Assembly: GCF_006345805.1 (NCBI RefSeq)
Contig: NC_043005.1
Coordinates: forward strand, 49,352,001 to 49,416,000
DNA length: 64,000 nt
Reading direction: 5' to 3'
From: Octopus sinensis
Taxonomy: Eukaryota
Part shown: positions 48,681 through 63,881 of the stretch, piece after piece
Position numbering within the stretch: position 1 is the stretch's first letter
Layout of the letters: each line of letters begins with the position of its first letter
Program-made: the position numbers and the translations under genes
The notes under the pieces: model-generated
Seen by the model: only the letters and a program-made list of their open reading frames with translations
Told to the model about the DNA's origin: nothing
Databases searched by the model: none

Positions 48681-49588
48681 GTAACGGGAATGGATAAAAG
48701 ATAACCAAATGGATATTGTAGGAATAGACAATTTAGTTATTTGAAGATTTGCTTCCCATTGTATGATACTCTGATGATAAGGCTGTGCTAGAGAGGACTA
48801 TGTTGTGCAAGAGAATAGATTTGGTCATGAGAAATGAACTTTTAGTTAATTGCGTTGAAACAGTAGTGGTATTACAGTTAGGCATGGATTAATATAAACT
48901 GCAAAATTTGAATTTAGAAATATTTACATAGTTGCTTATAAAATCCAACCATGATGATGATCATCATTTAACATCCACTTTTCCATGCTTGCATGAGTTG
49001 AACAGAGTTTATTTGAGGCAGATTTTCTGTGGCCAAATGAGTTGCCTATCACCAATCCTCACCTGTTTCCAAGCAAGCTAATATTTCACCATAGCCAGAC
49101 TAATTATTGAAGAATATTGAAAATGAATGATACTGCATGTATGACAGTGACAATCATATGCAGCTATCATAAGATGTCAAGCTGAGGAAACACAATGACA
49201 GACAGACAGACACACACACACACACACACACACACACGCACATGACAGCTTCTTTCAGTTTTTGTCTACCGAATCCACTCACAAGGATTTGAGTGACTTG
49301 GGACTATAGTAGAAAACACTTACCCAAAGGACCATGCAGTGGGACTAGACCCTGAACTATGTACTGGGTAGTAAACTTCTTATCACATAGCCACACTTGC
49401 ACCTAAAAATTTTCAGCCCCCCTCAGCATGGAATCAGATCCTAGCTTATCCCATGTGAAGATACTTATCACTATACCTCTGAGAAAGGTAATATTGTAGA
49501 GTTATAAATAAGATTGTAATTCTTCAGAATATCAAAATATAAAGTTAACAATAAATAAAATATAATCATTTGTTCTTTTCTACAGAAA

Positions 49589-49807
49589 ATGAATACCAAG
49601 AAAAAAAACACAAATAAAATGCCCAATTCAAACAGAATGATTGGCATTTCTTCTTTGTTCCGGGATGAAAACGACCAATTAAAAATGATCTTTGACAAGG
49701 AAGATGGTTCGCAGACAATCAAATCTAGCTCAAAATTTGAAGGCTTGCAGAATTTAAAATTCATGCCTGGAACCATCAGATCACCTTCTCGTGATCTACA
49801 AGCATCA
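49589..49807 (+). CDS. Coding exon 1 (of those visible) of a myosin-VII-tail-like MyTH4 protein
   Basis: Acceptor ttgttcttttctacag (exon starts 49586), aaaATG context, 73 open codons MNTKKK...DLQAS, donor gtaagt, phase 0. Confidence 0.7.
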
Positions 49808-50290
49808 GTAAGTTACAAATTTCATATATATTTTTCCCTAATTGAAACATACTTCCATTGCATGATGACCATAGAGGTAACTATCCTAATGAGTCTATTT
49901 ACAATGAGATTCAATTGTTCATTTTAAAAGTTTGATTCCATTTGTGTTACCAGTAACCCTGTTTTCTCCTATCAAAGTTACAGACTTTGGAGCTACATAT
50001 GAAAAGTCTTTTAAAAACACACATTCTATACCTTATTCTCAATTATTGTCCCAGTACAATTTCAGTGTCATTGAAGAGTTTGGATAAAACGCCTTGCAAT
50101 ATTGTTTTAATTCTCTACTTTCTGAGTTCAAACCTCATGGAGGTTCAACTTACCATTTTATCTTTACAGTGTTGATAAATAAAGTAGTAGTTAAGTACTG
50201 GTATAGATTCTTCTCTCTCTCTCTCTGTATGTATATATATGTGTGTATATATATATATATATATATATATATATATGTATGTATATATGT

Positions 50291-50544
50291 GGAGGCGCAT
50301 GGCTTAGTGGTTACAGTGTCAGCACCATGATCATAAGATTGTGGTTTTGATTCCTGGACCAGGCGACGCGTTGTGTTCTTGAGCAAAACACTTCATTTCA
50401 CGTTGCTCCAGTACACTCAGCTGGCAAAAATGAGTAACGCTGTGATGGACTGGCATCCCATCCAGCTGGGGAACACATATGCCATAAAAGCCGGGAAACC
50501 AGGTCCATGAGCCTGGCTAGGCTTTAAAAGGGTGCATTTATTTA
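50291..50544 (+). mobile_element. SINE family C: tRNA head with a CORE-like body
   Basis: Box A/B-like tggcttagtggtt...ggttttgattcc, then gtgttcttgagcaaaacactt...ctccagtacactcagctggcaaaaatgagt. Confidence 0.7.
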
Positions 50545-50577
50545 TTATATATGTATATATATTTGTCCGTCTTTCTA

Positions 50578-51842
50578 TCAGGTCATTGAGAATGGAATGT
50601 CCGATTTTCTTATACATCAAGTTTGACAGTCATTAACTCTAAAGTTTTATCTTGACAATTCTTTGTTTTACAACATTGAAGAGTTATATCCTTACTTTTC
50701 AAAATGCCATTCATGGAGTCTGATTATATTGTTAGTTTTCTCTTGGAAATCAATTTTTGTGAACCCATGGATAGATAAAAAATTCCTGTTGTTTATGAAT
50801 ATGAGCTCCGTCATGGAACCAATGCATCCCAGACAGCTTGAAACATCAATGAGGTGTTTGGTGAAAATGTAGTGAATGAGTGCACTGTACATCGATGGTT
50901 TAAGAAGTTCTGGTCTGGTGACTTTACTCTTGAAAATCAGCCCTGTGGTAGACCTGAGACCAAGGTGGATAATGATGAGCTGGAAACTGTAGTGGAAACA
51001 TACATTTCAAACTATGGGAGAGTTAGCAGCAAGGTTTGATGTTTCAATTCCAACTATATTGGACCATCTGAAACAAACTGGCATGGTTAAGAAGCTGGAA
51101 CACATGAAGTGAACAAGCATCAAATGGTACGTTATCTTGAAACTTGCTGTTCTTTGCTGTCACGGCATAAAAGCAAACCATTTTTGCATCTTATTGTTAC
51201 ATATGATGTAAAACAGATTCTTTTCAACAATAGCAAGCATTCTGCATGGTGGTTGGATAGAGACAAAGTGCCAAAACACAATCCAAAAAGAATATTAATC
51301 AAAAAAAGCTAATGGTATCTGTTTGATGGTCCAGCACTGGTGTCATTCGTTACAACTACATGAGACCTGGTAAGTCAATTACAGCAGATGTAGTCATCAA
51401 TCAATTGGATGAAATGATGAGTGAACTTGTAATTAAACAACTACAACCAAGTTTAGTCAATAGAGACAGGCCAATTCTCTTGCAAGACAATGCTCGACCA
51501 CATGTTGCACAAAGAACATTACTCAAGTTACAGGAACTGAACTTGGAAGTACTGTCATCCACCAGACCTTGCACCAACTGACTATCATGTTTTCCAGGCA
51601 TTAGACAACTTTTTGCAAGGGAAAAAACTTCAAGTCTGAAGTTGTAAAAACAGCTTTACATGATTTCATCACCTCTTGCTCTCCAGAACTCTTTACTGCC
51701 GACATAAATAAGCTACCGGTAAAATGGCAAAATTGTGTTGATAATTTAGGTGCATACTTTGATAAAATTCATTGCATTTTCTTGAGATAAAGTAAAATGA
51801 ACTTCCAGTTCAAAATCAGTCATTTCATTGTTAATGACCTGA
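50578..51842 (+). mobile_element. Full-length but heavily decayed mariner (DD34D, Hsmar1/mellifera-like)
   Basis: TA-tcaggtcatt...aatgacctga-TA ends. Peptide fragments RWFKKFWSGDFTLENQPCGRP, FLHLIVTYD, LLQDNARPHVA and PDLAPTDYH; many stops. Confidence 0.85.
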
Positions 51843-52119
51843 TATTTCTCTCTCTGTCTCTTCTTTTTCCCACTCTCAGAACTAAGTTGCATCATGAGAA
51901 AGGTTGTAGAGGTTTCCTTTCTCTAGAAATGGTAAAAGGTGTGCAATGGACAAACAAAGCTCTCCTCATATAAAGACAACAAAAACAAAAACAGAACAAT
52001 GTCATATGCCAGTGGAAACATCCTAAGACAAGTGCAATTCTGCACAAGACAAAAATTAAGAAAACATTAAATACATGTTTACTATGAATAATATTTACCA
52101 TAATATTTACAATAATATT

Positions 52120-61800: not shown

Positions 61801-62813
61801 AGAATTTTAATTCACTTGACGGAAACTTCTTTCTTCATGATGTAATTGATTTGTTTATCTATAAAAAATGCATCTGAAACAGCTGTAGTGAACCTAAACC
61901 CATTTGTGTTTTCATTTGTATAACTCAGTTGAACTCAGCATTGTGTTGTGAATGATTTAGAAATTCCAGACAACAATGTAACCTTCATTTCATTAAGTGA
62001 TCTCAGCCTGATGATTAGCTATGATGAGCATAGTTGATTGCATAACAATTGCATCATGAGCTTCAGCTAGCTTGGAAACATATGAAGCATGCATTTTACT
62101 TGTTCTTCTCCCCCAATTTGGATTTTTATTCATATTTTTAGCAGCTTTATAGAAATTATCAGCAGCCATATAGAAATTATCAGCTAATTGAATTTCCTCA
62201 CAATTTCAATACGGGAAAAAGTGTGTGACTCTCAATACCAATAAATTGTTATTGTATCTTATATACTATCCACTTTTTGTTCTCTATATCTGGCACTTAC
62301 TACTTGAAGCTTACATTCTTCCTACACTCAGATCCCCGGATCACACATTTATACATACATACATACATACATACATACATACATACATACATACATACAT
62401 ACATACATACATACATACATACACACACACATATATATATATATATACACATACATATATATATATATATGTGTGTGTGTGTGTGTGTGTGTGTGTATGT
62501 ATATATATTTGCATGTGTGTGTTCGTGTGTGTGCATGTGTGTGAGTGTGTGTGTGTGTGTGTGTATGCTCTTTCCTTTTCCCTATTCCTTTTCTGTCTTG
62601 CAAGTTACATAGCAAAAAAAAAGCATCTAGTACACACAGTAGTGTGTTTGACTCACCTGCTCTTATCAAATTGTCCAACCCATGCCATCATGGAAAACAG
62701 ATGTTAGATGATGATAACAATGGTGTTAATGCTTGCATATACATTACATTAATGGAAGAAACACACATCCACACATTTATGAATTTGTAATTTTGTTTTC
62801 TTCCATTTCCCAG

Positions 62814-62909
62814 AGCCGACCAATACCATTCAATTTCATCAGGGAACACTTTGCCAAGAAGTACTCTAAAAAGGATATTGATGATGCAATAAAGAAATAT
62901 GAAGAGCTG
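62814..62909 (+). CDS. Coding exon 4 of the MyTH4 protein
   Basis: Acceptor ttttcttccatttcccag, SRPIPFNFIREHFAKKYSKKDIDDAIKKYEEL (96 bp, phase 0/0), donor gtgggt. Confidence 0.8.
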
Positions 62910-63029
62910 GTGGGTATAAATTTCAGATTAATGTCACAAACATTTAGTTTATATATCCTTGGTCACTGTGCTTTTCTATGTCAGTCAGTGATAAAGGTCA
63001 AATGCAAACATACACACACACATGCACAC

Positions 63030-63165
63030 ATAATAGCTTCTTTCAGTTTCTGCTTACCAAATCCATTCAGAAGGCTTTGGTCAGCCAGGATTATAGTATA
63101 GGTGCTACACAGTTGGACTGGACACAGAACAATGTGGTTGGGAAGCAAACTTCTTACCACACAAT
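63030..63165 (-). mobile_element. Decayed SINE family A, 5' part
   Basis: gcttctttcagtttctgcttaccaaatccattcagaagg...cttcttaccacaca. Confidence 0.75.
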
Positions 63166-63768
63166 GACCATATATTTTCGATTCTGATTGCTGCTGTGGT
63201 CTTGAAGAAGGTAATAGAGAACAATTCCAGTGTTCTGCACTGCCCAAATCTTCTAAATGAGCTTTGCTATTGCATATCACTCTTGGTTTTGAATACAAAC
63301 TGTCTGAATGGGATGTGTCATATTTCATCCCATTTTAAACTCAGCCATCAGATCAGGAGAATATTTTTACCTGACAGGGACAGATTACATATAATGACAT
63401 GATAAGATGACAATAGGTGTACAAACATTCTCTTGAACTGTATTATTTTGTCTCAGTCATGGTAGAGAGTCATATAAAATGTTTTAATATGTCAGAGCAT
63501 TTCAAGATTATTCAAAGTGTTGGATTAAGAGTAGTATCATTTTAAATTTCAACACACAACAGTCTGTGTTCAAATTTTGCTGTTGTCAACTTTGTCTTTT
63601 TATCTCTTTGTTGATAAATTAGGAATTGACTAAATCAATTGAATATATCTATTTCGTGCAAACTCTGGCCTTGTCATATGTTTAAAACAATGAATATGTT
63701 CCTGATTTATGTAATATTATTAATCAAAAACAATGACAGAAATATTTCTTTTTAATTAATTTATAAAG

Positions 63769-63881
63769 GGTGTCAACCCACAAACTGATTGTACAAGCGT
63801 TCCTTTCCTGTTTCCTGGACAGCAAGTCCTTGACCACATTCAATTTCTGTGCTGTCTTGGCATGTTGAAGAATAGTCTCAG
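63769..63881 (+). CDS. Coding exon 5, MyTH4 core; the gene continues beyond the window
   Basis: Acceptor taatttataaag, GVNPQTDCTSVPFLFPGQQVLDHIQFLCCLGMLKNSL-R, donor gtaagt in phase 2. Compare Myo7a [24 protein letters not shown]. Confidence 0.88.

Follow-up and report, generated by a model that had tools for sequence, protein, structure and literature searches.

A probable motor-less myosin-VII-tail gene in Octopus sinensis and its relatives in other molluscs

A 64,000-nt stretch of the Octopus sinensis genome (contig C9:49,352,001-49,416,000, + strand, of the 2.72-Gb assembly G000; hereafter the window, within which positions given without a contig name are numbered) ends in five exons that resemble the start of a class VII myosin tail, and the locus raises the question of whether these are the downstream part of a full-length myosin or the beginning of a gene that encodes a tail with no motor. 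We conclude, with a probability of about 0.85, that this is a conserved protein-coding gene and the octopus member of a motor-less family of Myo7-tail proteins that is separate from Myo7a; a scaffold-type role is the reading that we prefer for its product. The initial annotation of the window had proposed a stand-alone headless paralogue of this kind, and the proposal is supported by the lack of a motor match on contig C9, a separate Myo7a locus on contig C8, a start shared among Octopus species, a clade with 100/100 support, in-frame stops in the mRNAs of two relatives and a family-specific motif in exon 1.

The five exons lie on the + strand with canonical splice sites and end in phases 0, 0, 0, 0 and 2; when joined they are exactly residues 1-244 of XP_036361843.1 (P0001), a 1239-residue Octopus sinensis protein named 'myosin-VIIa'. 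The exon set, phases and 244-residue product of the initial annotation are thus reproduced, the sole correction being the start of exon 5 at 63769, from which the total of 244 follows, and its estimate of introns of 0.9-6 kb compares with a measured 0.86-5.9 kb. Exon 1 (49586-49807, residues 1-73, phase 0), the first coding exon, has a GTAAGT donor and an acceptor (...ttctacag) that is followed by AAA and then by the ATG at 49589, the AAA being in frame with the start; the cag acceptor and in-frame AAA reported previously are therefore both present. Exon 2 (52759-52980, residues 74-147, phase 0) encodes a Ser/Asp-rich linker and a pre-MyTH4 helix region (FENFASKNFQ...PLLNSLLPPKDKNTHL), and aligns with the canonical Myo7 segment F.KFA..YFQ...PLL on the N-terminal side of the first MyTH4 domain (MyTH4-1). 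Exon 3 (58928-59011, phase 0), which reads AAMSSWITILKIMGDFPEYDY... at its start and encodes residues 148-175 (AAMSSWITILKIMGDFPEYDYTSVKSMD), is the only exon matched when the window is searched by tblastn with the Patella Myo7a tail (E = 0.01). It is followed by exon 4 (62814-62909, residues 176-207, phase 0) and by exon 5 (63769-63881, acceptor ag at 63767-63768, residues 208-244 plus 2 nt, phase 2), which opens MyTH4-1 (...VLDHIQFLCCLGMLKNSL-R) and ends ...HIQFLCCLGMLKNSL plus AG, part of a split arginine codon.

The complete protein maps colinearly to C9:49,401,589-49,479,534 on the + strand, in ~28 exons over ~78 kb with introns of at most ~8 kb. Exon 6 lies 6.95 kb beyond the window (L003:6836-6954), finishes the split arginine codon and continues to ...RGW. 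It is the addition of this outside exon to the 80-residue piece within the window that makes the MyTH4 domain recognizable; Pfam gives no match to the window piece alone, and detects the MyTH4 core (PF00784, E = 2.9e-10) once exon 6 is joined, which bears out the MyTH4 assignment made earlier from the window exons. In the whole of XP_036361843.1 Pfam identifies two MyTH4 domains (156 bits), two RA_2 (F1) and two FERM_M domains, a FERM_C1_MyoVII domain and an IRS-type F3 domain, with no myosin head (PF00063), no IQ motif, no SH3 domain and no PH domain. The protein is ordered as a low-complexity N-terminus of ~100 residues, the pre-MyTH4 helix, a MyTH4-FERM module, an SH3-like stretch that is degenerate, since Pfam detects no SH3 domain, and a second MyTH4-FERM module; ~104 residues stand ahead of the tail, compared with ~985 in full-length Myo7. 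Its best match among solved structures is Myo7a MF1-SH3 (3PVL, 2e-96, query residues 109-705), an alignment that spans the SH3 position, and other close matches are Myo7b MF1, 5F3Y and the Myo7a/7b MF2 structures 5MV9 (9e-76) and 5MV8 (~1e-75), with Dictyostelium Myo7 (1e-21) and Myo10 (1e-10) far weaker. The protein therefore has the tail architecture of class VII (MyTH4-FERM, SH3 position, MyTH4-FERM, with Myo7a/7b nearest), and has neither the class VII motor (PF00063) nor an IQ neck, single alpha-helix (SAH) or post-IQ region. Because motor and neck are the defining features, the predicted product of this gene should, on its sequence, not be called a myosin.

A head could in principle be encoded elsewhere on the contig. 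Genome-wide searches with the Pfam Myosin_head profile (PF00063) and with the Patella Myo7a motor and neck, in which the best 65 of 252 and 53 of 184 candidates respectively were scored, gave no match on the 110-Mb contig C9, and this absence is strong evidence, albeit not exhaustive, that the gene has no motor; the search of the upstream scaffold thus agrees with what had been noted for the preceding 49 kb. The same searches placed the canonical Myo7a motor at C8:79,975,485-80,024,116 on the + strand, with 63-91% identity. Within the window, tblastn with seven Myo7 motor-and-neck queries gave only matches with E-values of at least 2.9 and scores of at most 23 bits, with stops inside them, and an IQ regular expression found no match, in keeping with the earlier failure to see motor, IQ or SAH exons. 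Three weak motor-like tblastn matches (44313-44411, 44608-44706 and 48271-48357) were dismissed as noise, since they contain stops or a microsatellite-encoded YIYIYT and are not colinear. Transposon remnants and microsatellites make up the upstream 49 kb, together with a single assembly gap, a stretch of Ns at ~10,780-10,880 that appears as a run of X within the open reading frame (ORF) 10551..10895.

Some other myosin-like loci were seen in the course of these searches. Candidate canonical-type double MyTH4 exons lie on the - strand at C8:79,720,201-79,741,000, 234 kb from the + strand Myo7a motor; the C8 motor and tail exons are thus divergent in orientation, and a motor block of at least ~50 kb appears inverted, either through mis-orientation in scaffolding or through a real inversion. 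The small unplaced contigs C9002, C688, C1302, C2502 and C7512 carry compact myosin-head matches, many with internal stops; contamination, retrocopying or pseudogene formation are possible explanations. On C9002 the head match is accompanied, within a few kb, by MyTH4 and FERM matches, so that it looks like an intron-poor full-length MyTH4-FERM myosin.

The closest relatives of the octopus protein are themselves headless. In an exhaustive phmmer search of 1.84 billion representative sequences the nearest relatives are proteins of 1258-1330 residues, motor-less in size, and full-length Myo7 proteins (at least 2150 residues) appear only after them, at 33% identity. Named motor-less matches come from more than 20 mollusc species, under database names of the form 'myosin-VIIa(-like)', and all four mollusc classes sampled have them: chitons (Liolophura), gastropods (Haliotis, Lottia, Babylonia, Batillaria, Aplysia, Physella, Biomphalaria, Bulinus, Bradybaena and Candidula), bivalves (Pecten, Mizuhopecten, Ylistrum, Mytilus, Ostrea, Crassostrea, Dreissena, Mya, Ruditapes, Solemya and others) and cephalopods. 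Family members are ~1.2-1.33 kaa in overall size, and all have 100-170 residues before the tail, against ~985 in full-length Myo7. Where a species also yielded a full-length sequence (e.g. Mya and Babylonia), a canonical Myo7a of 2170-2190 residues is retained alongside; in these two genera both genes lie on contigs of equal length. Among cephalopods, the orthologue of Octopus bimaculoides has 1240 residues and is 90% identical (a single sequence under its RefSeq, UniProt and EukProt entries, which are possibly not independent), a motor-less model is also present in Octopus vulgaris, and Argonauta contributes a partial sequence, which answers the check for orthologues in other cephalopods proposed in the initial annotation; the start MNTKK is common to all three Octopus species.

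Three sequences were set aside. P0036 (1401 residues) looked headless, and its contig begins inside IQ motifs, which makes it a 5′-truncated full-length Myo7; P0049 of Bulinus falls within canonical Myo7a in the tree; and P0136, considered as a spliced octopus cDNA, is only the second half of a split Octopus vulgaris gene model. Within the motor-less family, P0210 of Crassostrea virginica (1675 residues) has an extra PCI domain (PF01399), probably through fusion of its gene model with a neighbouring gene.

The N-terminus is informative as to where the protein starts. In an alignment of complete family proteins a short SAFGDD-like motif lies ~20-95 residues (mostly 25-45) after the start methionine, with the forms ASAFGDDDED or TSAWGGDERHF in bivalves, AAAFGDD in gastropods, GSVFGDDNDD in the chiton, LPSIFGE in P0032 and ISSLFRDEND in Octopus, where it is carried by exon 1. 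A second small block, FG.ATLSK (FMPGTIRSP in Octopus), follows it, and is succeeded by a Ser/Asp/Glu-rich stretch and then by the pre-MyTH4 pattern F..FA..F. The octopus N-terminus aligns only with other motor-less proteins. Exon 1 thus encodes a family-specific region and is therefore not a diverged neck exon, and its motif places the annotated methionine at the position expected for the family; the motif itself is a candidate family-specific short linear motif for binding or phosphorylation. Two mRNA contigs from relatives point the same way: L024 (SRR27666058; 4002 nt) encodes the complete 1258-residue P0032 behind a 172-nt leader with three in-frame stops, and L026 (SRR32622312; 4165 nt), which belongs to the oyster subclade, encodes a 1302-residue protein with an in-frame stop 10 codons before its ATG.

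In the octopus genome itself an in-frame TAA is found at 49556-49558 on the + strand, 10 codons 5′ of the ATG in an unspliced genomic reading, and ORF 49559..49927 begins directly after it; this stop matters only if there is no splicing at 49585/49586. Around the exon 1 acceptor sequence identity is 0.96-0.98 over a background of ~0.9, which is no clear excess and leaves use of the acceptor unsupported by this comparison. The CpG pattern bears on how far upstream the transcription unit extends. The observed/expected CpG ratio is 0.44-1.05 over the first 40 kb of the window and 0.09-0.41 from 40 kb to its end, which defines a CpG-depleted domain (40000-64000) whose upstream edge is at least 9.6 kb from the ATG; in Octopus bimaculoides, too, CpG is scarce (0.09-0.23) throughout the 10 kb that precede the ATG. 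We infer that such depletion marks a germline-methylated gene body, and if it does, the transcription unit should start at least ~10 kb upstream of the ATG and should not run through the upstream 38 kb, a pattern that fits a predicted non-coding leader exon.

The initial annotation was right about the existence of this CpG pattern. Its placement of the gene start near 41-43 kb is not supported by the step, which lies at ~40.0 kb and abuts a lineage-specific insertion of LINE (long interspersed nuclear element) and satellite sequence. This insertion (38,100-40,700) comprises a tandem repeat and an antisense LINE reverse transcriptase (39,418-40,509), is absent from the orthologous region of Octopus bimaculoides, coincides with the CpG step and may displace the apparent domain boundary in Octopus sinensis. 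The leader donors suggested at ~42910 (AAG|GTAAAA) and ~42936 (AAG|GTAATG) are likewise present as donor-like sequences and find no backing in conservation, as the 1.75-kb stretch around them does not align to the upstream 10 kb of Octopus bimaculoides; we do not retain them as candidates.

Trees of the tail region (1132 columns; a quick tree and a careful tree, both built without named Myo15, Myo22 or PLEKHH references) recover the motor-less proteins as a single clade (support 100/100) on a long stem (0.69), whose internal groups largely track the mollusc classes, while canonical mollusc Myo7a forms its own separate clade, also with 100/100 support and with short branches. The comparison with mollusc Myo7 that the initial annotation had in mind thus gives a clear separation. 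The octopod branch is very long (stem 0.92-1.18), and the octopus protein is only ~31-33% identical to canonical Myo7 tails. P0032 and P0202, both derived from mRNA, are sister to the octopods with 100/100 support and, judged by tree position only, are probably from decapodiform cephalopods. The Octopus protein therefore has all the attributes of the family: membership of the 100/100 clade, an N-terminus within the 100-170 residue range that carries the motif, and no motor.

The deeper position of the clade is less firmly placed. In the quick tree it lies outside canonical bilaterian Myo7, and groups with canonical Myo7 to the exclusion of distant MyTH4-FERM myosins with a support of 85 in the SH-like approximate likelihood ratio test (SH-aLRT); the careful tree has a basal polytomy and does not resolve either point. 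Uniting the motor-less proteins with canonical mollusc Myo7a in one clade, as would be expected of a duplication on the mollusc stem, is not rejected by the approximately unbiased (AU) test (p = 0.134). Since chitons, gastropods, bivalves and cephalopods all have the family, its distribution implies, on these sequences, that it arose at or before the base of crown Mollusca, and its presence in both Aculifera and Conchifera would probably make this motor-less descendant older than 500 million years. The most economical history would be that a Myo7a gene was duplicated, that the copy lost its head and that its evolution then accelerated.

The gene is maintained under moderate purifying selection. 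Neutral DNA is 88-92% identical between Octopus sinensis and Octopus bimaculoides, and over 1219 aligned codons from these species dS is 0.094 and dN 0.049, giving a dN/dS of 0.52 (bootstrap 0.39-0.72; Fisher p = 5e-5). Constraint is strongest in the second MyTH4 domain (MyTH4-2; dN/dS 0.17) and in the pre-MyTH4 region with MyTH4-1 (0.37), and values of 0.68-0.76 are found in the N-terminus, in FERM1 and in the SH3-like stretch and linker. Such moderate constraint agrees with the very long octopod branch.

Several observations weigh against a conserved motor-less gene descended from Myo7a. A very degenerate motor relic may have escaped the genome-wide searches; a search with the N-terminal 284 residues for octopus transcript-sized fragments found none, and the transcript evidence consists of mRNA contigs from relatives only; the dN/dS of 0.52 is higher than one would expect of a conserved scaffold and, together with the great length of the octopod branch, may reflect relaxed or changed constraint; and the placement of the clade relative to bilaterian Myo7 leaves both its age and its Myo7a parentage to be inferred. 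The rival explanation that the initial question poses most directly is that these exons are the 3′ part of a full-length MyTH4-FERM myosin, with motor, IQ and SAH exons beyond a very long upstream intron and with the annotated ATG as an internal methionine. The good acceptor and in-frame AAA of exon 1 would suit it, the motor searches covered the best candidates only, and other octopus myosin genes do span hundreds of kb, with heads and MyTH4 exons ~200-290 kb apart on contig C17. We nevertheless consider it very improbable, given that neither the Pfam profile nor the Myo7 motor query has a match on C9 and none is present in the window, that the orthologues in more than 20 mollusc species are uniformly motor-less with N-termini of 100-170 residues, that in-frame stops precede the homologous start in two relatives' mRNAs, and that exon 1 encodes the family's own N-terminal motif rather than neck sequence; moreover, the introns of the gene do not exceed ~8 kb and the CpG ratio is high upstream of 40 kb. 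A similarly slight prospect attaches to derivation from another MyTH4-FERM lineage (PLEKHH/MAX-1, or a derivative of Myo10, Myo15 or Myo22) that merely resembles Myo7. The unsettled basal position in the Myo7 tree and the composition of the reference set, which holds no named Myo15 or Myo22, leave some room for this, but the protein differs from PLEKHH/MAX-1 in having two MyTH4-FERM modules, separated by an SH3-like spacer, and in lacking a PH domain, Myo7a/7b predominate by a wide margin among its relatives of solved structure (1e-76 to 1e-96, with Myo10 at 1e-10), and it groups with canonical Myo7 in the quick tree, with moderate support (SH-aLRT 85) on a point that the careful tree left open.

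That the octopus gene is a decaying relic, a truncated Myo7a duplicate that is headed for pseudogene status and has no function in octopus, is given a small chance: the overall dN/dS of 0.52, the still higher values (0.68-0.76) of the N-terminus, of FERM1 and of the SH3-like stretch and linker, the very long octopod branch and the loss of an SH3 domain detectable by Pfam are all compatible with decay. Yet the 3.7-kb ORF is intact over ~28 exons in three Octopus species despite ~10% neutral divergence, and has a partial homologue in Argonauta; its dN/dS is significantly below 1, falling to 0.17 and 0.37 in the MyTH4 domains, and the family has been kept in four mollusc classes. Headless isoforms are known for Myo10 (PMC6345916) and NCBI predicts 1073-residue isoforms of a Drosophila class-VII-type myosin, so one might also ask whether an internal promoter of the canonical Myo7a gene yields these exons as a headless isoform, in the manner of the brain-specific headless Myo10. 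We regard the likelihood of this as close to negligible, as the canonical Myo7a motor and a closer-to-canonical tail are on C8 and this gene is on C9, which is not the arrangement of an isoform; gross assembly error joining C8 and C9 would be needed, and the C9 protein, ~31-33% identical to canonical tails, stands in its own clade.

What a separate motor-less Myo7-tail protein might do can be considered from the residues that it has kept. Positions invariant in Myo7 are retained by the family to ~20-50% overall depending on the domain, with 33 of 65 in MyTH4-1, 19 of 39 in the pre-MyTH4 region, 31 of 72 in the F1 lobe of FERM1 and 26 of 46 in the F2 lobe of FERM2, and with low retention in FERM1-F3 (13/60) and FERM2-F1 (10/59). 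Since so many Myo7-invariant residues are replaced, chiefly in these last two lobes, partner specificity has probably shifted in part relative to Myo7a. The canonical Myo7 segment GNLV(R/K)GS(K/R)LLCETSLGYKMDDLL is almost invariant (its bilaterian form is V(R/K)GS(K/R)LLCET) and contains the RGSK basic pair of FERM2 (human R2176/K2179) that has been proposed to act in autoinhibition of the motor by the tail (bioRxiv 10.1101/2024.09.17.613491). The motor-less proteins that cover this segment have lost the first arginine, most of them keep the second basic residue, and the surroundings are remodelled, the Octopus sequence in the filtered alignment being HGSERIFFQIE. Loss of the arginine is expected where there is no head left to inhibit, and argues weakly, as far as sequence can, against trans-inhibition of the Myo7a motor.

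Lacking a head, the protein has none of a myosin's ability to bind actin and move along it. It could act instead as a static scaffold or adaptor, in which the two MyTH4-FERM modules would tie membrane proteins or adaptors to the cytoskeleton, and if the gene is real we put the chance that it encodes such a non-motile adaptor or anchor at about even; competition with Myo7a for shared partners is possible, as our second choice. One conceivable function, which would need no force generation, is to organize cadherin/Usher-type complexes in sensory cells of the microvillar or ciliary kind. More tentatively, and at slightly less than even odds, we suggest that the family is an ancient motor-less descendant of myosin VII that, with its own N-terminal motif and altered FERM surfaces, forms an unrecognized scaffold distinct from Myo7a. 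It would have been missed by myosin inventories because these search with the motor domain.

The relationship to known systems can be stated briefly. Class VII myosins (Myo7a/Myo7b; Drosophila crinkled) share the order of pre-MyTH4 helix, MyTH4-FERM, SH3 position and MyTH4-FERM, whereas the octopus protein has no motor, IQ or SAH, is ~31-33% identical, has no detectable SH3 domain and has lost the RGSK arginine. To our knowledge stand-alone headless myosin genes are rare; plants reportedly have headless class XI derivatives, stand-alone genes that keep the myosin tail without the head, although these come from a different kingdom and from an unrelated class of myosins, whose tail is of the DIL type. 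PLEKHH proteins combine PH domains with a single MyTH4-FERM, and PLEKHH1/2/3 (MAX-1) resemble the octopus protein in being non-motor MyTH4-FERM proteins; the octopus protein differs in its second module, its lack of a PH domain and its Myo7-type sequence. In the catch muscle of molluscs, catchin/myorod is also myosin-derived and headless with a unique N-terminal piece, but it arises by splicing from the myosin II heavy-chain gene rather than from a gene of its own, and has a coiled-coil rod rather than a MyTH4-FERM tail. Among MyTH4-FERM myosins the only known headless form that we found is the Myo10 isoform: headless Myo10 (Hdl-Myo10) of mammalian brain does not induce filopodia and localizes through its tail domains (PMC6345916). 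It is likewise a MyTH4-FERM myosin tail made without a motor, but comes from an alternative promoter of the Myo10 gene, whereas the octopus protein has a gene to itself, one that diverged long ago and encodes a distinct N-terminus. We note that the 1073-residue Drosophila isoforms are predicted beside a 2122-residue class-VII-type myosin in D. rhopaloa and D. suzukii, and are possible headless isoforms in flies.

In the searchable literature, outside which most subscription journals lie, no account of molluscs having a Myo7-type gene without a motor was found, which is absence of evidence only; the sequences are already public under the automatic name 'myosin-VIIa(-like)', and this name is misleading because the proteins are not motors. 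In genomic and single-cell studies of molluscs, the two genes may be conflated when myosin genes are counted or Myo7 is used as a marker. If the reading favoured here is true, a motor-less gene conserved in four classes would show that the Myo7 tail has a selectable function without its motor, and would provide a natural experiment that separates scaffold from motor roles in Usher-type complexes.

The non-coding parts of the window are rich in mobile elements. A segment at 29,500-32,100 with a G+C content of 0.55 and an observed/expected CpG ratio of ~1.05 encodes a long LINE-type reverse transcriptase and is probably a young insertion. Within the gene, as judged by eye from translations, intron 1 contains a mariner/Tc1-type transposase remnant (50,840-52,680, + strand), intron 2 an antisense LINE endonuclease/reverse transcriptase fragment (53,800-55,300, - strand) and intron 3 a sense LINE reverse transcriptase (60,250-61,660, + strand), and (TA)n, (CA)n and (TATG)n microsatellites are numerous in the introns as well.

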